DNA of 64,000 nt from Octopus sinensis (taxonomy: Eukaryota). Positions 4,469-63,870 of this stretch are shown one piece after another. Below the pieces are notes generated by a model. It was not told where the DNA came from. It made no database searches and was given only the letters and a program-made list of their open reading frames with translations. The stretch covers positions 27,279,360-27,343,359 of the forward strand of contig NC_043019.1 in NCBI RefSeq assembly GCF_006345805.1, written 5' to 3'. Both the position numbers and the translations under genes were made by a program. Within the stretch, counting starts at the first letter, position 1, and the number at the start of each line of letters is the position of its first letter.

Positions 4469-6102
4469 AAGGACAGGTTTTTTTAAAAGGGATCCATGAG
4501 AAAACTCATTTAAATAAAAGGGGTCCTTGGTAGTGAAAAGGTTGGGAACCACTGCTTTAATCAAACATTCCTATGATTGAGAGTATTCCAGCTGTGACCA
4601 TCCTTTCTTTTAAGGGCTACCTTGGACTACATTAGCCAATGTGTCTTACCTACTTAGCATGTCTTGAGCAACCCACTCAACTGTTGTATAAATCATTCAT
4701 CAAAAGGTAGAAGTGGTGGTCGTGGTGGGAGGGAAGAGGTGGACTGCTTTTGTTGGTGAGGGCTGAAGTGATTTGACGTAAGCTTGTTAAACCAGACAAA
4801 TGACTGCAAACCGGTAAATAGAAAGTTTGTGATATATAATGGAGACAGATTTCAAATGTGTCATATCATTAATCTAGTTTATGTTGGGTGTGAATGTGGC
4901 ACAGTAAGATGACACAAAGTGATTATGAAAGGATCCATGATGTACTAGCAGGTGAGGGGGGTGAGAGAAGACATGTTGAATAGTGTTTTTAGTTTGCCAT
5001 CTAGAGCTGAAGAAACTGGGTTATAAATAAACCATCCTCATCATCGTCATTGTTTAATGTCCACTTTTCCCTGCACTCGTGGTTCGGATGGAATTTGTTG
5101 AGGTGGATTTTTTCTGCAGCCGGATGCCCTTGCTGTTGCCAACCCTCACCTGTTTCTAAGTAAGGCAAAGTTTCTCCATGGCCAGACATGTTTTCATGGA
5201 AGACTGAAAATAAACGACACTGCTTGCGTGATGGTGACATTCGTTTACAACAGTCACATAAAATCAAAGCAAACTCACACATACACACTGGGAATTTGTA
5301 GCCCCTGCTTGTAAACTGGTGTGGATTATAATGGGTTCCAGACCCATCAATGTCTGGAAAACTAGAGTTATCTTGTAATATTTATCCTTAGTAAGGCAGC
5401 AAGCTGGCAGAAACGTTAGCATGCCAGCCGGAATGCTTACGCTCTGAGTTCAAATTCTGCTGAGGTCGACTTTTGGGGAGGGGGCAGTCGATTAGATTGA
5501 CCTCAGTATGCAACTAGTACTTAATTTATCAACCCCGAAAGGATGAAAGGCAAAGTCGACCTCGACAGAATTTGAACTCAGAGTGAGCGTAAAGCCAGAC
5601 GAAACCACAGAGATTGAGGTGGGACTGAGTAAAGTGGTTGGTGTTAGGAAGGGCGTCCAGCTGCAGAAACCATGCCACAAAAGACAACTGGGCTCTGGAC
5701 AGCTCTCCGGCTGGCCGGCCGACTCCTTTCAAACTGTCCAACCAATGCTAGCACAGAAAACAGGATGTTAATTAATGGACAATGATGAATGCAAATGTCC
5801 TTTAATATCCCCTTATATGAAACTCATTATTATGAGTAGTAGTAGTAGTAACAATGATAATCCTGTCTTTATTCAGGAGTGCAATAAAAATATTTACATA
5901 TTGTTTTTTAAATGTTATAACAAACTATTGCGCGCGTGTGTGTGTGTGTGTGGAGCATGTGAGTATGTAACTTTAATGGGAAACTATAAAATAAATATTC
6001 TATTTGGCAGCAATGACAAATGATTATGAGTTTATGATATCTACTATATATAAGTGTGTGAGTGATTGTGCTAGATGTAGCAGAATGATGATGATGATGA
6101 TG

Positions 6103-14259: not shown

Positions 14260-14605
14260 ATCTTTCAAAGCATAAACTGATATCATTGAAGCTTTTACTC
14301 ACCTAAGAATGTTTCCTTGATCAGAATTAAAAGTTGGAGCAATTATTATGCTTCTTAGAAACGTCTCTATAACTCAAGGTCTGTGCAATTGAATTCGCTT
14401 GGAAGTACTTCAGCTCCATGAGCATAGCATCGAAGCATCAGATGAGAATACTGATTCCAAGAATAAAACTTACTCCAAGAGATGCAAACATTCCATTCCT
14501 TCTGCATCAGACCCAGTTTCCAGGTTCGTCTGTCCTATTCTATGACAATCAATAAAGCACAGGGGCAAACATTCAATAGAGTTGGCATACACTTGTCACA
14601 GCTAT
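14260..14605 (+). mobile_element. Helitron Rep-helicase (PIF1-type) C-terminal relic
   Basis: Translates LKVGAIIMLLRNVSITQGLCN*..., ILIPRIKLTP.., VRLSYSMTINKAQGQTFNRVGIHL (helicase motifs), with a stop and frameshifts. Confidence 0.85.
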
Positions 14606-14839
14606 TTTTCTTTACTACCCACAAGGGGCTAAACACAGAGAGGACAACAAGGACAGACAAACGGATTAAGTCGATTACATCGACCCCAGTGCGTAACTGG
14701 TACTTAATTTATCGACCCCGAAAGGATGAAAGGCATAGTCGACCTCGGCGGAATTTGAACTCAGAACGTAACAGCAGACGAAATACTGCTAAGCATTTCG
14801 CCCGGCGTGCTAACGATTCTGCCAGCTCACCGCCTTCTC
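14606..14839 (-). mobile_element. tRNA-derived SINE family A (A1 tail), full-length, with 17-bp TSD; dozens of related copies across the window
   Basis: Minus strand has TGGCAGAATCGTTAG A-box, GAGTTCAAATTCC B-box and core CCTTTCATCCTTTCGGGGTCGATAAATTAAGTACC; TSD ACACTTGTCACAGCTAT at 14589-14605 and 14840-14856. Other copies e.g. 662-893, 20868-21078, 21790-22021, 29560-29792, 32655-32886, 38094-38291, 59125-59355. Confidence 0.9.
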
Positions 14840-16220
14840 ACACTTGTCACAGCTATGCTTCATCCAATGAATAGTTCCCTCTGCAACGCCAACCACTTCA
14901 AGGGAGTAATGGGTGTTTTTTTACATGCCACTAGCATATATGAACCTTCTTGAACAGATCCAAAAGATGCCCCCTAACTGCTTAGCATGAAGTCATCCAT
15001 CAACACACCGCAACTTCTGGCCCACAGATGTGTTGTGTCTTCCATTTGTCCTTGCTACCGCAAATACAATAGCCTTCGTTCCCTTTGATACTCTCGTCTC
15101 CTTCCTTCGTCCATTTTGTCTCCAATCCTGCTTTCTATCCAAACTATTCAAATTTCTTTTTCACGCTGAGAGTTGCTGAAGCATGGAACAAACTGCCGGC
15201 ATCGGTTGTTAGTTGTCGGAGCACTGCATCCTTCAAAACTTCCATGCTTTCTGAGATTCGCCAACACTACATCTGAATTTCTACCCTCCATACACACACA
15301 CAAGCATGTATCTGACTCATACATTGTTTGCTTTCCAGACATTTGTACATTACTGCATACACTTTATACGCACTTTCTGACAAGTTGTGGTGCACCTGGG
15401 CACTGTATACAATAATTTCATTTTATTATATTAAACCCTCAATCCACTGCAATCTCCACCTTATCCTTCTGCTGCAGTTATTCCACCTAAATATCAGCCA
15501 TATTGATTTCGTGACTACAAGGGCGTGTGAAACCACTTTCCCTGACTAAATAATAATTAACCCTTTAACCACAAAAGTATTCTAGAAATGATGCTAAATA
15601 TCTACCAAAATAATCAGAGCTGGTTTTTGTGTAAGTTACATTGCTTCAATAGATTTGACATATTTCAACAAAAAATAGTTTCAAACATGATATTCCTCAA
15701 CAAAAGATAAAACTGCTTTCCACAGTTAACGGTAATGAAATTTTGAGTAGATATATTTGATTTCTACAGCAAAAGGTTTCGAATACTGTTTTACGGAGCC
15801 GGAAATTCGTAATATCAAAGGCTAAAGGGAGATAACTCTCATAATCTTTGCCTCGTCGTGCTTGCATGAGGAAGAGAAAAATAGTTCATATTCCACCGAG
15901 ATTGACTTTGCTTTTCATCCTTTCGGGGTCGATAAAATAAGTACCAGTTGAACACTGGAATTAATATAACCAACTACCTCTTTCACCCAAAAAAATTCTG
16001 GCCTTGTGGCTATAGTAGAAAGGATTATAACTCGTCGTAAAAACATAGATTAGTGAGTGAAAGAAAACCAACTGGAAACCGACTACTAACCTATTGAACT
16101 GGTAAACTCGTTCACCCGATGTGGAATAGCGCTGAGGGGCTTTTATGTATTTAATTAAAGACTTTGCAATGAAACTAAACTCGAAATCCTCAAACTCAAT
16201 CAAAACGAAATTAATGTTTC

Positions 16221-24073: not shown

Positions 24074-24497
24074 ATGACAGGTGACATCTTTGCCTATACC
24101 AGTCACTTGTTATGTCTGGTATTGCTGGCGTGTTTGTTGTGTTGGCCTCCTTGTGTGTGGACCACTCGAATGGATGATACTGGCTTCTACACCGACAATG
24201 GCCTGGAACAGTCTGTGATGGTCAGCCGGATCCCACATCGTGTGAAGAAGGAATTTCAACAAGAAATACTCACCTTGATGGGATTACACCACAAACCGAA
24301 ACCGCGGGCTCCCGGTAAGGAGACTTCTGCTCCCCGCTTCATGATCGATCTGTACAATAGGCTGCATGGTTCAGGTGCCAGTGGATCCATTGAAGACGAC
24401 GATGAGGATGAACACCCCCACTTCTTCAGCAGAACTTTAGAAAATGAAATGCCTAAACTCAACAGTTCTGATGTTATCATGAGTTTTGTCAACCATG
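24074..24497 (+). CDS. BMP5-8: BMP5-8 (gbb/60A class) exon 1: signal peptide and prodomain start
   Basis: ATG 24074; hydrophobic leader LLCLVLLACLLCW; prodomain motifs EFQQEILTLMGL, SAPRFMIDLYN, SDVIMSFVNH; donor G|gtgagt at 24497/24498 (424 nt, phase 1). Confidence 0.95.
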
Positions 24498-24900
24498 GTG
24501 AGTATTTACTCATTATTATTATCATTATTATTATTATCATTATTATTATTATTATTATTAGTGAAAGTGCGTGGCTCAGTGGTTAGAGCGTCGAGCTTAC
24601 GATTGTGAGATTGCTAGTTCGAATCCCAGACCGGGCTGCATGTTGTGTTCTTGAGCAAGACACTTTATTTCATGTTGCTCCAGTTCACTCAGCTGTAGAA
24701 ATGAGTTGCGATGTCACAGGTGCCAAGCTGTATCGACTCCTTTGCCTTTCCCTTTGATAACACTGGTGGCATAGAGAGGAGAGGCTGGTATGCATGGGCT
24801 ACTGCTGGTCTTCCATAAACAACCTTGCATGGACTTGTGCCTGGGAGGTTAACTTTCTAGGTGCAATCCCATGGTCAGTCATGACCAAGGAGGATCTCAG

Positions 24901-51301: not shown

Positions 51302-52585
51302 TCAGTAGTCGTAACTGGCGACGGTTGGCATGACACCATAGGCAAGATCAGTCCGTATCTGCCATCGAAGAGAATGTCTCGGGTTTTGTGAAGGTATCAC
51401 ATAATTATTGGGCACGAAAGTTTTCCGTGGACGGCTTCCTATGACGTCGTGTTTGGCAATTTTCTCTTTAATGCTCCACCGAAGGGCGTTGTGATTATTT
51501 TCACCGGGAGGCTTGTGCAGGTCCCAGTAGTTCTGAAATTCATGGAACCTACTCACGGGGTCTGTCTTCCTGTTTTTCTTCAATCTCGGCGGTGTCGGAG
51601 TAACTATAATCGTGGACTTGGGCCGGCTATCGCAGGAACTTGGAGATCTCGGATAGAAATAGCCGTCTCTATTTGTTATCTCACTCAGACGATTCTGGTA
51701 CTCAGCGGGGTCAGCGATACTGCTACAGCAACTGCCACAGACACTACTACTAGTGCTACTGATACTACACACAGATTCACTTTCATCGATGTAACGTTTA
51801 CCATCGGGGCCTTTGCGAGACACCTTCCTCTTGGTAACAAAAGTGTTTAGCAGTGGAGGTTTTTCGGTGTCGGTGGAGGCGATTTGTGATGGTTTGGAGA
51901 CCGATACTTGTGATGAGAGGGAGGAGGAAGATGACGAAGGCACAACTTGACGAGACCAAGCGTTTTCTTTGTTCTTGGGATGATCAAAACTATTTACCTG
52001 GTTTGGCTGCGGAACGTTTGTTCTGGTGAAAGTTCGAAGGAGATTCTCCTGCTTTTCATGTTCCGTTTCCGATTCATTAGTCAGTGGCTGTTGAGTGTAT
52101 GTGTATTGATGGTTGAGTGTCATACCCGAGTGACCATCCACCTTATTGACACTGTTGAACAATTGACAGCTTCTATAAGCAACGTGTTCGTAACTTTCAA
52201 CTGTATTCTGGGGCCGATTGTGAGAAACGGTAACAGACGACGGCTCCATGGAATTAACAGAACGATAATTACCTGTGTGAGTTAGATATGACTTAGCATC
52301 TTCAACGTTCTCGGCAGCTGGTGATGTGAACGTTGGAGAAGTTATAGAAAAGGGTGCAGGAGGGGACGACGAAGACAAGTTTGGGCAAGTGACCGGTGAG
52401 TTACTGGAAGAAGGGGAAATTGTAGTGGATTTATCAACATTCTGAAGTGAATTGTAACTACTTTCTTTCATCAAATTTAGAATATCTTCTCGAAATTCAC
52501 GCAAAGTACTCTGGTCGATATCCTTAATCCCAAATCGCGCAAGTTCGTTTCTTATTTCTTCTTCTGAAAATTCAAACGAAGCCAT
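51302..52585 (-). CDS. HYLS1: Hydrolethalus syndrome protein 1 homolog (centriolar/ciliary), single coding exon, 427 aa
   Basis: Long uninterrupted ORF (first ATG 52585; the track start at 52591 is TTG). TKRKVSRKGPDG, SRPKSTII and the C-terminal KTDPVSRFHEFQNYWDLHKPPGENNHNALRWSIKE...FVPNNYVIPSQNPRHSLRWQIRTDLAYG match the HYLS1 conserved blocks as recalled (e.g. [28 protein letters not shown]). Confidence 0.9.
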   Translation of the reverse strand: MASFEFSEEEIRNELARFGIKDIDQSTLREFREDILNLMKESSYNSLQNVDKSTTISPSSSNSPVTCPNLSSSSPPAPFSITSPTFTSPAAENVEDAKSYLTHTGNYRSVNSMEPSSVTVSHNRPQNTVESYEHVAYRSCQLFNSVNKVDGHSGMTLNHQYTYTQQPLTNESETEHEKQENLLRTFTRTNVPQPNQVNSFDHPKNKENAWSRQVVPSSSSSSLSSQVSVSKPSQIASTDTEKPPLLNTFVTKRKVSRKGPDGKRYIDESESVCSISSTSSSVCGSCCSSIADPAEYQNRLSEITNRDGYFYPRSPSSCDSRPKSTIIVTPTPPRLKKNRKTDPVSRFHEFQNYWDLHKPPGENNHNALRWSIKEKIAKHDVIGSRPRKTFVPNNYVIPSQNPRHSLRWQIRTDLAYGVMPTVASYDY

Positions 52586-52643
52586 TTTCAAATATTTTTG
52601 TTGTTAGTTACTAACGCCACCTGGTGTTAGCATCAGTAAGTTA

Positions 52644-58112: not shown

Positions 58113-59516
58113 TGTGGGTTAAAGTAGTGAGGAAAGGCAATTTCCTCATTGCTGTTTCTCACTACTTTAGCCTATTCCTTCTGACTCAAAGGGAAACCAC
58201 CATCAGCTGTTTCTTGAGCAAGACAATCACACAACCACAACTTCAATTGCTGCTCTAACTGGAATTTTAGTGCAACACCTATTTGAGCACTCTGAACACA
58301 TGCCTGTTAGCTTGAGTCATCCTCATGTAAAGTCCTCATATCCTAGATATATGTGTGTGTGTGTGTGTGTGTGGTTGATGACATAAGAATTTATAATCCG
58401 AAGAGTGTGAACTAAGTCTTTTTGGGGAATGGTGAAACACGAAGCCAAGAAAGCTATAAACAACATCATATAAATATTCTTTTCTACTCTAGGCGCAGGG
58501 CCCGAAATTTTGGGGGAGGAGGCCAGTCAATTAGATTGACCCCAGTATGCAACTGGTACTTAATTTCTCAACCCCAAAAAGGATGGAAGGTAAAGTAGAC
58601 CTCAGTGGAATTTGATCTCAGAATGTAAAGACAGATGAAAAACCACTAAGCATTTCGTCTGGCATGCTAACGTTTCTGCCAGCTCACCGCCTTATCTTGG
58701 TACCATATATTCTTTTCTATTCTAGGAACAAGGCCCAAAATTTTGGGGGAAGGGGTCAGTCAATTAGATCAACCCCAGTATGCAATTGGTACTTAATTTA
58801 TCAACCTCGAAAGGATGAAAGGTAAAGTCGACCTTGGAAGAATTTGAACTCAGAGCATAAAGACCGCTAAGCATTTCACCCGGCATGCTAACATTTCTGC
58901 CAGCTCACCGCCTTACAACATATAAATATTGGGTTAAAAACCTTTCGGATAGAAAAGTTGGAAGCTGCCCGTGGGACAGCTTTAGTCTTTTTCTATCCAA
59001 GAGGAATTTTCCACCCAATACTTACATGCTTTTATTTATAGTATTATGTGCTTTGAATTTCACCATCCAAAAATAGGATTATATATTGAGAGAGAGAGAA
59101 AGTTAATATATATACATATATACCTATTTCTGTACTACCCACAAGGGGCTAAACGGAGAGAGGACAAACAAGGACAGACAAACGGATTAAGTCGATTATA
59201 TCGACCCCAGTGCATAACTGGTACTTATTTAATCGACCCCGAAAGGATGAAAGACAAAGTCGACCTCGGTGGAATTTGAACTTAGAATGTGAAGACAGAC
59301 GAAATACCGCTAAGCATTCCGTCCGGCGTACTAACGATTCTGCCAGCTCGCCACCTTATATACATATATACACACATACAAATTCACTATATATGTATAT
59401 ACACACATTGGTGATATTTACATATCAAATAATCAGTAACATAATTCACAAAGATAACACAGAACTAGTAAGTTCCAATTCTGGCCATCACCTCATACTA
59501 CAATATCAACAATAGC

Positions 59517-59797
59517 TCATAGTTCTTCTTTCTTGGTTCTGTTGACCTTTACAGTTGCTCTGAGCTGCTTCTTTCCTTGACCCCTTTTTCTTGATCCCTT
59601 CGGCTCCTTTAAATATCTCATTTTGGGGTGTGGGACATTTCCATGGCACCCTTGCATGAGGTGCTCAGCTGCTCGGAGTCCAGATCTAAACGCCCCCTGG
59701 ATGGTGCCGAATCTGGTGGAGTCAGTATAGTCGTTGGCGAAGTAGATGTGAGGACAGACCGGCTTGGAGACAGCATCCCACTGGGTTTGGGACATAC
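59517..59797 (-). CDS. Flavin amine oxidase family gene, terminal exon; upstream exons lie mostly beyond the window
   Basis: Acceptor ...ctgcaactgaaag|GT ATG; encodes (G)MSQTQWDAVSKPVCPHIYFANDYTDSTRFGTIQGAFRSGLRAAEHL...TKKEEL*; aligns without gaps to the family C-terminal FAD-binding segment (LFFAGEHT...TVHGALLSGLREA type). Confidence 0.85.
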
Positions 59798-61567
59798 CTT
59801 TCAGTTGCAGAGAGAAAAAGATGAAAATGAGAAACAATATTTCTGATACAGAATGCTGAGTGAAAAGGATAAAAAGAAAAAAAAAAACCTGCATCAACAA
59901 CATTATAACAATCTTTAGTTTTATGTGTCTTTCTTCTTCTCAAGGAGAAAATGAAGAAGACAACGAAGATGACAAAGACAATGACGAAGATGACAACGAT
60001 GAAGAAGAGAGGACGACAGCAATGAAGACAGGGTGACAAAGACGACAGCGACAAAGATGACGGAGACATTGACAACAAAGACAATGATGATCAGGAAGAA
60101 AGAAAGAAAAACGGAAAGAATGAAAGAAAGAAAGAAAGAAAGAAAGGAAAGAAGGGAGGAAGGAAAGAAAGATGTAAAGAAAGAAAGAAAGAGAGAGAGA
60201 AAGAAAAAGTGAGGAAGAAGAATGAAGAGAGAATGAAAAGAAGAATGAAGAAAGGAACAATAAAGGAAGAAGATCGAAGAAGAAATTATTCATTAAGCCC
60301 CTAAAGTGTGAAAAGTGAAGTTGACTGGAACAGGATTGAAACTCCCTATGTAAGGGAGGAGGACCTAATTAAATATAACATCATCTCCCCTTGTATATGT
60401 TGACCTACATAACAATAATGTAGTTGTTTTGTATAAACATAAGCAGTGAATATGTATTAATGTGATCCCATACAGGCTTTCTGCTTTGATTTAGGGACTA
60501 GGATCTAACTGTGGGTATGTCTCCATAGTTACACAGACAAGGGGTCCAAACAGAATCATTGTCACCTGAGGAATTTTCAAAAATTATTCTTAATAATAAA
60601 AGAAATAGGCACAGGCGTGGCAGTGTGGTAAGAAGTTTGCTTCTCAATGACATGGTTCTGAGTTCAGTCCCACTGTGTGGCGCTTTGAGCAAGTGTCTTC
60701 TACAACAGCCCCAAAACTTTAACAACAAAAGCTAATATGGGCCCCACTCCAATGGTCATATGGATCCTGATTGAGAACTATTAGACTAAACCTTTGAAGC
60801 TGGTGCCCCAGACTGGCCACTTTTCAATGATTGAAACAAATAAAATATAGAACATAAATAAAAAAAAAAACTCTGTCTCAAAGGTCTGTGAAATGAGTCA
60901 ACACCATTAACAGAAGGAGAAGAACGAGGTGGGGTAGGGGTGGTATATATGTTAAATCTTTGGAGACAAAACTTTAAAGCAAACAAACATTTTTACAGAT
61001 TGGCACCATTTCAACAGAGGCAGCAAAACTTGTAGTCTTATAGTTAAAATAGGACCTGACATCTTGCAAAGCTTGTCACTGGTGACCGAGAGAGTGGCAA
61101 AAGGGTTGTGCAAGCATTTATCACTTAACCCTTTTGATACCAATCCAGCTGAAACTGGCTCTGGCTCTGAGTACAAATGTCTCATTTTCATAAGTTTTGA
61201 ATCAAAATCTTCCACCAAACCTTAGTCACAATTTATGTTGCTAACACTAGCTTAATGATAACTAAGTTATTTTTCTATATTCTTTGTTATAATTAAAGTA
61301 ATTTAAAGAAACACAGAGCATCTCAAAATAAATACAGTAATGAAAGGGTTAAAAGCACTCATGCTGGTGCCATGTAGAAAGCAGTACTGATGGTACCACA
61401 TTAACCCTTTTGATACCAATCCGGCTGAAACTGCCTCTGGCTCTGAGTACAAATGTCTTGTTTTCAAAAGTTTTGAATTAAAATTTTCCACCAAACCTTA
61501 GTCACAATTTATGTTCCTAACACTAGCTTAATGATAACTAAGTTATTTTGCTAAATTCTTTGATATA

Positions 61568-61952
61568 TCTTTATATATAAAAGTCAAGTTGTGTGTCCGT
61601 CTCTTACGATTTAGATTCCTAACTACTCCCACATTTTGCGGTGCAGTTTAACCAAAACTGGGTATCTTATAGTCGTGATTCATATCGAGCCCTTCTGAGT
61701 ATTAGCGCGCGTCTACGATGAGTCTACAATTTAAAAAAAAATTTACCATCATTTTTTCCATTTTTAATGCATTTTTTCACTATTATATAAGGGAAGTAAC
61801 TCTCTAAAAATGTCTATGATGAGTCAACGATTTTAAAAAGAATTTACCATAATCTTTTTTCCATTTTTAATGCATTTTTTTGCTATAACTCTAAAAATGC
61901 TTATATAGTTATTTCCCTTACAAACCCGAGCAACGCTGGGCGATACTGCTAG
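61568..61952 (+). mobile_element. Non-autonomous Helitron, 385 bp, complete ends
   Basis: 5' TC (TCTTTATATATAAAAG); subterminal hairpin CCCGAGC-AAC-GCTGGG 61925-61940; 3' CTAG; inserted between A and T with no TSD in a TTAA MITE. Confidence 0.85.
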
Positions 61953-62737
61953 TTTAAAATAATTGAAAGAAACACAGAGCACCTCAAAATAAATACAGCA
62001 ACGAAAGGGTTAAATCCAAAGACATACGGATGTCTCACTATTCATTTCATATCTTGATCCGTTTTGTATTTTATAAACTCCTATGGTGATGGCTGCATAG
62101 TGACTATTCATGCACAAGTAATGATGAAAGTAAATTAGACCTTATCAGGTTGAATGTGAAATGGCCATCATATGAGAAGATGAGGTTATCATGTCACATA
62201 CACACACACATCTAGCAAAAGAATACCCTCCATCAGGCATTTGCCATATCCTGAACGCCTTACTTCCCTGGGCATGGACACATTGAAACTCCGACGTCTG
62301 GCAGCTGACTTGGCAGACACCCATAAAATTATCAACCATCGCACAAACAATAACTCTGAGCACCTCTTCAAACTCCACCCATCTAACACCCGTGGACATA
62401 TTTACAAAGTAAGAAAACAGCACAGCTCCCATGACTTCAGGAAACATTTTTTCACGCTGAGAGTTGCTGAAGCGTGGAACAAACTGCCGGCATCGGTTGT
62501 TAGTTGTCGGAGCACTGCATCCTTCAAAACTTCCATGCTTCCTGAGATTGGCCAACACTACACTTGATTTTCTCCCCTCCATACACATACAAGCATGTTC
62601 ACTTTCCAGACATTTCTACATTACTGCATGTACTTTATATGCACTTTCTGACAAGTTGTGGTGCACCTGAGCACTGTATACAATAATTTCATTATTATTA
62701 TTATTATTATAACTAAAATTGACATGAGAATACTCAC

Positions 62738-62863
62738 CGACGGTGGGGTAAGAGAGAAGTCCCTGACTGAAAGGATCAGCTGCCCAGTTACTTGTTGTCA
62801 CACTCAAGATGGCATCTTTGGACAAATTCTTCAAATGAAACATTGCTGCTAACCGTTCCAGTG
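62738..62863 (-). CDS. Flavin amine oxidase family (PAO/LSD/MAO-like) gene, penultimate exon
   Basis: Acceptor ctgtttcttctag|; encodes LERLAAMFHLKNLSKDAILSVTTSNWAADPFSQGLLSYPTV (WxxDP...G motif); donor G|gtgagt; 126 nt, phase 1 to 1, in frame with 59517..59797. Confidence 0.85.
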
Positions 62864-63399: not shown

Positions 63400-63870
63400 T
63401 GAGTGGTCATCGGCATCTTCACTATCTCGTCCGGCAGCTTATTCCACGGATCTGCAACCCAGACGGAGAAAGCCCCTATCCTTCAATTGAGATGAAATTG
63501 TCGCAGATAGAGCTTTTCGGAGTGACCCCGCAACCGACGCTCTGGAGCAGGAGTGAAGAACAGCTCTTTCGAGAGGTTACACTTTCCGCTTATGATGTTG
63601 TGAGCAAGAATGAGATCACCACGGCATTGGCGTTTTTCTAGAGAATAAAGGTCGAGCGTCTTCAGCCTTTCTTCATAAGACAAATGCGTGAGACCAAGAA
63701 CCATGCGGGTAGCCAGCTTCTGGACTCTTCCGAGATGATGTATGTCTTTGAGGAGATAAGGAGAAGAGGCTTGAATCCCGTACTCCAATATGGGTCTCAC
63801 CAGCGGGACTTTATGATTTTCGTGAGAGGAACAGTTAGGCCTCCAATACTGAGGAATCAGGAAACTGGAA
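63400..63870 (-). mobile_element. CR1-clade LINE RT relic (second family)
   Basis: RPILEYGIQASSPYLLKDI..L.RVQKLATRMV.GL..LSYEERLKTLDLYSLEKR..RGDLI. Confidence 0.85.

Follow-up and report, generated by a model that had tools for sequence, protein, structure and literature searches.

The subject of this analysis is a gene whose last two coding exons lie at positions 59517-62863, on the minus strand, of a 64,000-nucleotide stretch of the Octopus sinensis genome (NCBI RefSeq assembly GCF_006345805.1, contig NC_043019.1, positions 27,279,360 to 27,343,359 of the forward strand; the whole stretch is called the window below). This seven-exon gene encodes XP_029649757.1, a protein of 524 amino acids (aa) whose sequence and predicted structure assign it to the flavin amine oxidase superfamily, as a divergent representative with the amine-oxidase fold, and it is placed by the alignments in a clade of uncharacterised KDEL-tailed amine-oxidase-like proteins that was seen in this analysis only in molluscs. 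The interpretation favoured here, with a probability of about 0.6, is that the protein would be a luminal flavoprotein of the endoplasmic reticulum (ER) which still binds flavin adenine dinucleotide (FAD) and in which the classical amine:O2 oxidoreductase role has been lost or changed.

Gene Structure and Encoded Protein

The window is 100% identical to O. sinensis CM016881.1 across 6484 bp, and exons 1-5 were found intact upstream in the same genome. When candidate GT and AG sites were searched, a single GT-AG solution emerged, whose seven coding exons yield exactly the translation of XP_029649757.1; the orthologue of O. bimaculoides likewise has a seven-exon structure, and the GT-AG borders are intact in both species. 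Coding exon 6 of 7 (62863-62738, minus strand, with acceptor AG 62865-62864 and donor GT 62737-62736, i.e., 13366-13491 of L003 in this unique GT-AG model) corresponds to residues ~390-432 of XP_029649757.1 and contains Trp416 (the equivalent of LSD1 W751), the GLLS motif (G424-S427, at 62762-62751) and an NLS sequon. It is followed by intron 6 (62737-59798, minus strand, 2940 nt, GT...AG), which is rich in repeats and degraded retroelement-like open reading frames (ORFs), and then by coding exon 7, the last one (59797-59517, minus strand, acceptor AG 59799-59798, stop codon TGA 59519-59517), which covers the C-terminal FAD motif and the final helix and then a tail that is basic and disordered (predicted local distance difference test, pLDDT, <50) and the terminal KEEL.

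Splicing of exons 6 and 7 gives a peptide of 134 aa that includes NWAADPFSQGLLSYPTVGMSQTQWDAVSKPVCPHIYFANDYTDSTRFGTIQGAFRSGLRAAEHL and ends in NRTKKEEL before the stop codon; it contains NWAADPFSQGLLSYPTVG directly followed by MSQTQW and, further on, IYFANDYTDSTRFGTIQGAFRSGLRAAEHL, after which come the basic tail and KKEEL-stop. The exon 6/7 junction is continuous in spliced Sepia mRNA. A word-indexed protein search with this peptide returned one fragment only, and the family was found by an exhaustive representative search, in which a full-length protein of Argonauta hians showed 65% identity over all 134 residues. From the Argonauta protein the chain of orthologues led to O. bimaculoides and then to the cluster of that protein, whose O. 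vulgaris and O. sinensis members have the window peptide as their last 134 residues. The O. vulgaris entry CAI9739531 is an isoform model with its start inside the signal peptide.

Fold, Domain Architecture and Naming

The window peptide matches the Pfam family PF01593 (Amino_oxidase) with E=2.6e-14 and 53.8 bits (cut-off 19.8) over profile positions 370-442 of 443, and the full-length protein matches it with E=7.9e-55 over residues 45-478. Besides Amino_oxidase, the Pfam scan of the full-length protein gave only Rossmann sub-motifs and no SWIRM domain (PF04433), and the NCBIfam scan gave only Rossmann-motif matches, all of them sub-threshold. When compared with mouse PAOX, maize polyamine oxidase (PAO) and LSD1, the peptide is gap-free in both motifs. 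The AlphaFold2 model of the O. bimaculoides orthologue has a mean pLDDT of 88 and a predicted template-modelling score (pTM) of 0.87, with low values in the leader and the last 40 residues, and Foldseek ranks the oxidase domains of LSD2, LSD1 and maize PAO as its top matches; the predicted two-domain fold of the amine oxidases is supported by both. In the N-terminal part, GxGxxG, the Glu of LEAR and RYGGRVWT are intact, the unit from VVVVGAGVAGLAAAR to VTVLEARRERYGGRVWT being located in exon 1, outside the window.

In RefSeq and ENA, XP_029649757.1, XP_014779148.1, CAI9739531/2 and the Argonauta hians orthologue are all named as LSD1/KDM1 homologues, under labels of the kind "lysine-specific histone demethylase 1A / 1 homolog 3". 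Since the protein has no SWIRM and no Tower domain (the alignment with LSD1 runs straight through without a Tower insertion), this name is taken as a similarity label, and "LSD1 homolog" is a similarity artefact. A systematic mis-annotation ("lysine-specific histone demethylase 1 homolog 3") is flagged in the cephalopod genomes examined, namely three Octopus species and Argonauta.

Changes at the Active Site and in the Flavin Motif

The column counts given here refer to 271 aligned relatives, to alignment A3 of 97 sequences (7 mollusc, 90 non-mollusc) and to a clade alignment of 14 sequences. In the C-terminal flavin motif, for which h-h-F-A-G-[ED] is expected, Octopus has FAND: Asn453, encoded by AAC at 59735-59733 (minus strand), stands in place of the near-invariant Gly of FAGE. 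This Gly is present in 269/271 relatives, the exceptions being only Octopus (Asn) and a fourth Octopus-like species known from contig L001 (Ser), and in 96/97 rows of A3. In this column Sepia has the codon GGC, L001 has AGT, O. bimaculoides has AAT and O. sinensis has AAC, a series consistent with a Gly→Ser→Asn path by single transitions, and the residue that follows is Asp rather than Glu in octopods. FAND is read in three independent assemblies (O. sinensis, O. vulgaris and O. bimaculoides), so that a sequencing error is ruled out.

The second Leu of GLLS, Leu426 (codon CTC, 62756-62754, minus strand), corresponds to Tyr761 of LSD1, Phe403 of maize PAO and Tyr430 of mouse PAOX; the equivalences with LSD1 Y761 and maize PAO F403, as well as that of the Asn of FAND with the Gly before Glu801, were obtained by counting along the printed LSD1 alignment. 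This column has Tyr in 234/271 and Phe in 12/271 relatives. Within the mollusc clade it is usually occupied by Ser, Val, Ile or Gly, while Phe is found in cuttlefish-like sequences (TTC at the equivalent codon in Sepia) and Leu in octopods. According to these alignments the loss of the Tyr of GSYS is a clade-wide mollusc trait, shared even by members with Lys and FAGE, and because it is a trait of the whole clade it provides no evidence for an inactivation specific to Octopus.

A further change lies outside the window. The residue corresponding to LSD1 K661, the Lys of the Lys-water-flavin N5 motif (in GNLNKVVLCFDRVFW), is Ser in Octopus and Argonauta (SSVNSVVFKFASIFW), i.e., Ser320 in O. bimaculoides numbering. 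This column has Lys in 87/97 relatives; decapodiform sequences (cuttlefish) have Asn here, most other molluscs have Lys or Arg, and Solemya has Ser. It has been reported that K661A abolishes the activity of LSD1 and that flavin reduction is 1400-fold slower in maize PAO K300M (PMC3184146). Tyr430 and Lys315 belong to the small set of residues that are conserved in more than 90% of animal APAO and are common to SMO (PMC3517346); the equivalents of the PAOX/SMOX residues Lys315 and Tyr430 in Octopus are Ser and Leu, respectively.

The counterpart in Octopus of the GA-x-W-I-H-G loop, which in relatives is adjacent to the flavin, is GIVMFDDDDPEN, with four consecutive Asp, at residues 95-107 of the O. 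bimaculoides and 94-106 of the O. sinensis protein; it is encoded by exon 2, outside the window, and the alignment is uncertain here. MAFFT sets DLGIVMFDD against the consensus DLGASWIHG, and phmmer gave no alignment to PDB chains in this loop. The equivalence with Trp62 and His64 comes from MAFFT only, because phmmer with the N-terminal 93 aa aligned just the first 45. The four-Asp run could be a candidate cation- or polyamine-binding site. Trp416, Thr463 and GAxxSG are kept.

The Mollusc Clade and Its Predicted Residence in the Endoplasmic Reticulum

The closest non-cephalopod relatives of the peptide are found in bivalves (Sinanodonta, Ylistrum and Solemya) and gastropods (Haliotis, Patella, Bulinus, Biomphalaria and Candidula), and they are annotated solely as hypothetical, uncharacterised or unnamed proteins. 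In a profile search with the family alignment, members scored ~690 bits and the next relatives, which are bacterial, 263 bits among the matches listed; this search missed even known members and thus says little on the distribution outside molluscs. The nearest non-mollusc relatives among those matches are bacterial or metagenomic proteins of the 'flavin monoamine oxidase family' (at most 263 bits), and plant LDL2 scored 208 bits. These bacterial proteins have ~28% identity (250-263 bits), a single domain and a similar length, and they keep the Lys, the Tyr and FAGE, but they have neither the KDEL tail nor the Cys pair of the mollusc clade. A limited and incomplete literature search found no paper on a KDEL-tailed amine-oxidase-fold family or on these accessions.

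At the N-terminus, MVVSFTVLLLCLVWSHAVEG followed by SK shows a short hydrophobic core with small residues at -3 and -1; by a heuristic reading, a 13-residue hydrophobic core precedes AVEG/S, and the remainder of the model is a globular oxidase fold, with no transmembrane anchor evident. A hydrophobic leader stands ahead of the Rossmann strand in 13/14 clade members, the exception being Bulinus, whose gene model is apparently truncated. At the C-terminus, KDEL, KEEL, RDEL, REEL or KTEL ends 14/14 members, which come from three mollusc classes, while the charged tail before the tetrapeptide varies freely in length and sequence and cannot be aligned among the 14. Because the tetrapeptide is kept in all members while the preceding tail varies, KEEL is not incidental, and it is read as a KDEL-type retrieval variant, as the initial annotation of this stretch had proposed. 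In the window, the KEEL codons occupy 59531-59520 and the TGA 59519-59517 (minus strand). The ER retrieval pattern is of the [KRHQSA][DENQ]EL type, which KEEL fits. KEEL and RDEL have been listed as putative ER retrieval sequences (PMC8276033).

TGA directly follows KKEEL in the L001 species as well as in O. sinensis. In the protein P0001 (from L001, Logan SRR11869391), this TGA was read as Trp and the translation continues for 50 residues into the 3′ untranslated region, which is a translation-table artefact; KKEEL plus Trp as a case of non-terminal KEEL was rejected, since the aligned L001 DNA has TGA there. Artefacts of this type could mislead conservation arguments on C-termini.

Two Cys are invariant in 14/14 clade members, one located five residues before FA(G/N) and one after the last helix. 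In O. sinensis they are Cys446 (59756-59754, minus strand), in the motif PxCP[HYG][IL][YF]FA, and Cys482 (59648-59646, minus strand), just past the last helix, which is the candidate disulfide partner of Cys446. In the 97-sequence alignment, the seven mollusc rows alone have Cys in the Cys446 column, the others having G, A, D or E, and the Haliotis and Patella proteins have no Cys besides the two invariant ones. From the β-α geometry and the conservation, Cys446 and Cys482 probably form a disulfide. ER residents such as ERp72/PDIA4, which ends in KEEL, also combine a signal peptide with [KR][DE]EL after a charged disordered tail, although their fold is unrelated to that of the Octopus protein. 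In summary, the comparison across the clade lends strong support, short of proof, to the residence of this soluble protein in the ER lumen. No KDEL-tailed flavin amine-oxidase-fold protein was found as an ER resident in the limited literature search.

Selection and Expression

The gene is under purifying selection. Over the full coding sequence, the ratio of nonsynonymous to synonymous substitution (dN/dS) between O. sinensis and O. bimaculoides is 0.167 (dS 0.132, dN 0.022), and the introns of the two species are ~90% identical, dS being approximately equal to the intron divergence. The last exon of O. sinensis compared with L001 gives 0.19, and a Sepia-type orthologue pair which keeps the Gly gives 0.168. 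Since dN/dS is equal with Asn (Octopus) and with Gly (Sepia), the Gly→Asn step did not relax the constraint. Because the dinucleotide motifs are intact and the gene is under this selection (Thr463 and GAxxSG also being kept), the protein would be expected to bind FAD still.

The orthologue of Sepia pharaonis is an uninterrupted ORF on RNA-derived contigs of 1.9 kb from several runs, one of the source runs being S. pharaonis whole-animal RNA (PMC5541922). No Octopus transcript contig was recovered, and expression in Octopus is presumed from the gene models and from selection.

Interpretation and Alternatives

In the favoured interpretation, the protein would enter the secretory pathway through the N-terminal signal peptide, be returned to the ER lumen by the C-terminal KEEL, and probably be stabilised by the clade-specific Cys pair as a disulfide. 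Along the lineage, the Lys of the Lys-water-flavin N5 motif would have been changed to Asn or Ser in cephalopods, the flavin-facing aromatic Phe to Leu in octopods, and, in Octopus, the Gly of the C-terminal FAGE, the tightest glycine in the flavin site, to Ser or Asn. The outcome might be an enzyme with changed chemistry or a changed substrate (e.g., with poor O2 reactivity), or else a ligand-binding pseudo-oxidase; sequence alone would not decide between a new activity and a binding pseudoenzyme. A broader and more tentative proposal, which is judged somewhat less probable than its negation, is that an undescribed ER-luminal KDEL-retained family exists in molluscs and that its cephalopod branch was converted, under continuing selection and by the stepwise loss of the Lys, the aromatic residue and the Gly, into a non-oxidase: a flavin-bearing ligand sensor or chaperone-like pseudoenzyme, or an enzyme of new redox chemistry.

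Several points weigh against the favoured interpretation. The signal peptide is a heuristic call from hydropathy and the (-3,-1) rule rather than the output of a trained predictor. At the Lys site, Arg is found in some mollusc members, and most members are non-aromatic at the Tyr site yet keep FAGE, so that the clade may use a different but active catalytic arrangement. In mouse PAO, mutation of the equivalent Lys reportedly affects flavin reduction only modestly. Asn is the non-Gly residue that most readily adopts a left-handed backbone, and the replacement of Gly by Asn is thus perhaps structurally tolerated; the equal constraint with Asn and with Gly also argues against a loss of function at that step. 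Finally, at 82 generic conserved positions (columns at least 85% conserved in the 90 non-mollusc relatives, of which the outgroups keep a median of 78.5), cephalopods keep 58-61 and other molluscs 54-61; by this count the cephalopods are not globally more eroded than other molluscs.

As for the altered active site, to which the initial annotation had pointed, the idea is strengthened by the loss of the K661 equivalent, which had been missed because the site lies outside the window; on the other hand, the loss of the Tyr is clade-wide, and only Gly→Asn is specific to Octopus. The limited literature search brought up no characterised active subfamily in which these substitutions occur. The other observations of the initial annotation agree with the present results: the amine-oxidase fold is borne out by PF01593, the AlphaFold2 model and the Foldseek neighbours; GLLS, FAND, the KEEL end, the intact ORF and the splice sites are all present as described; and the AAC codon of Asn453 was found where it had been placed, a single-base error being excluded by the three assemblies. 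The checks it had proposed gave a full gene with intact upstream exons, a signal-like leader (by heuristics), an intact GxGxxG, and a dN/dS that indicates purifying selection.

Among the alternatives, it is considered unlikely that the protein is an ordinary active polyamine or amine oxidase of the ER lumen, in which activity survives the substitutions and the role of the Lys is taken over by a different residue or water network. The purifying selection is typical of an enzyme, the N-terminal FAD motifs are intact together with Trp416, Thr463 and GAxxSG, and clade members with Lys and FAGE may well be active; maize PAO, an apoplastic enzyme whose signal peptide directs it into the secretory pathway, is a precedent for a PAO of this pathway. 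The polyamine oxidases (maize PAO, PAOX, SMOX and yeast Fms1) have the same fold, ~470-520 aa and E-values of ~1e-26 to 1e-20, but they are apoplastic, peroxisomal or cytosolic and not, as predicted here, ER-retained. Moreover, Octopus is without the equivalents of Lys315 and Tyr430 (from pairwise alignment) and of Trp62 and His64 (from multiple alignment only), the Gly of FAGE is also replaced, and a mutated Lys is by itself enough to cripple LSD1 and maize PAO (PMC3184146). Likewise unlikely is a flavin-free scaffold, in which Asn would obstruct the ribityl/pyrophosphate site for FAD and ER retention would serve solely a structural or binding function. It would agree with a Gly that is found in 269/271 relatives and changed only in Octopus and with the shortening of the adjacent Glu to Asp in octopods; however, three Octopus species and Argonauta show full conservation of GxGxxG, the Glu of LEAR and RxGGR, which is unexpected if FAD were dispensable, dN/dS is not raised relative to the Gly-keeping Sepia, and the Gly→Ser→Asn path by single transitions was followed under continuing constraint.

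The remaining alternatives concern other identities of the gene. A secreted defensive L-amino-acid oxidase (LAAO) of the escapin, aplysianin A and achacin kind, the context that the initial annotation had tentatively raised, is very unlikely. These mollusc flavoproteins belong to the same superfamily and have a signal peptide; they form another subfamily of far weaker similarity, LAAO chains giving E=1.7e-13 to 3e-12 compared with 1.3e-26 for LSD1 and 7.6e-26 for maize PAO, and they are secreted and active, whereas the conserved ER retrieval signal of the Octopus protein argues against secretion and the catalytic Lys is missing. LAAOs share this Lys, which is fold-wide in the amine oxidases. 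A decaying pseudogene or an annotation artefact deserves even less credence: the odd substitutions at near-invariant sites and the lack of a recovered Octopus transcript contig would fit it, but there are seven intact GT-AG exons in two species, a dN/dS of 0.167 with dS close to the intron divergence, identical substitutions in three assemblies and an orthologous mRNA in Sepia. The least credible of all is a nuclear histone demethylase of the LSD1/KDM1 type, as named by RefSeq and ENA. LSD1/KDM1A and LSD2/KDM1B are the best PDB matches in both sequence (E ~1e-26) and fold (Foldseek E ~1e-37, TM-score ~0.72 normalised to the query), from which the pipeline naming comes, and they share GxGxxG...LEAR.R.GGRV, the WxxDP motif and the C-terminal FA-x-[ED]-x-T...GA..SG. 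In contrast, the Octopus protein has only 524 aa, no SWIRM and no Tower, and instead of nuclear targeting it has a predicted signal peptide and KEEL, and the LSD1 residues K661, Y761, G800 and E801 are Ser, Leu, Asn and Asp, respectively; this identity is refuted at the level of domain architecture.

Neighbouring Genes and Repeats in the Window

Some 7 kb further downstream on the strand of the oxidase gene, a single ORF of 429 aa (51302-52591, minus strand) carries a HYLS1_C domain (E=3.7e-25) and represents a hydrolethalus-syndrome-protein-1-like centriole/cilium gene. At 24074-24586 (plus strand) there is an ORF of 170 aa that begins in a signal-like manner and matches the TGF-beta propeptide domain (E=2.4e-18); it is probably the initial coding exon of a gene for a BMP-type ligand, and it ends in an Ile-rich low-complexity stretch that is likely intron read-through.

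Two intronic ORFs, 63483-63800 (minus strand) and 62241-62567 (plus strand), resemble by eye the C-terminal part of the reverse transcriptase of non-LTR (long terminal repeat) retrotransposons, and they gave no Pfam match at E<=0.01. A repeat of ~170-235 bp, with copies 90-93% identical and in both orientations, is spread across the introns of the gene and has the appearance of a short interspersed element (SINE); copies are located at ~61120-61570 and ~61960-62030 in intron 6 and at 4927-5157, 5668-5902 and 14662-15107 of L003. A repeat-derived sequence is shared by 59210-59515 (plus strand), just 3′ of the oxidase gene, and 14482-14874 (plus strand); its translation reads ...RRNTAKH..RR.NDSASSPP... 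and its DNA, ggcgagctggcagaatcgttag..., is like a tRNA-derived SINE. In addition, a long CT-rich tract of low complexity (cttt/cttc repeats) at 59940-60300 (minus strand) in intron 6 lies directly upstream of the polypyrimidine tract of the last exon and yields spurious ORFs of more than 100 aa.

Significance

The known locations of flavin amine oxidases are mitochondria, peroxisomes, the cytosol, the nucleus, and the apoplast or secretions. If the favoured interpretation is true, the ER-retained clade would add a compartment to this list and raise the question of amine and H2O2 chemistry in the ER lumen. In the cephalopod branch, nature would also provide substitutions in an ordered series, at positions that proved critical when mutated in LSD1 and PAO, which may be convenient for probing the need for the Lys-water-flavin motif and the Gly of FAGE, and the route from an oxidase to a pseudoenzyme.

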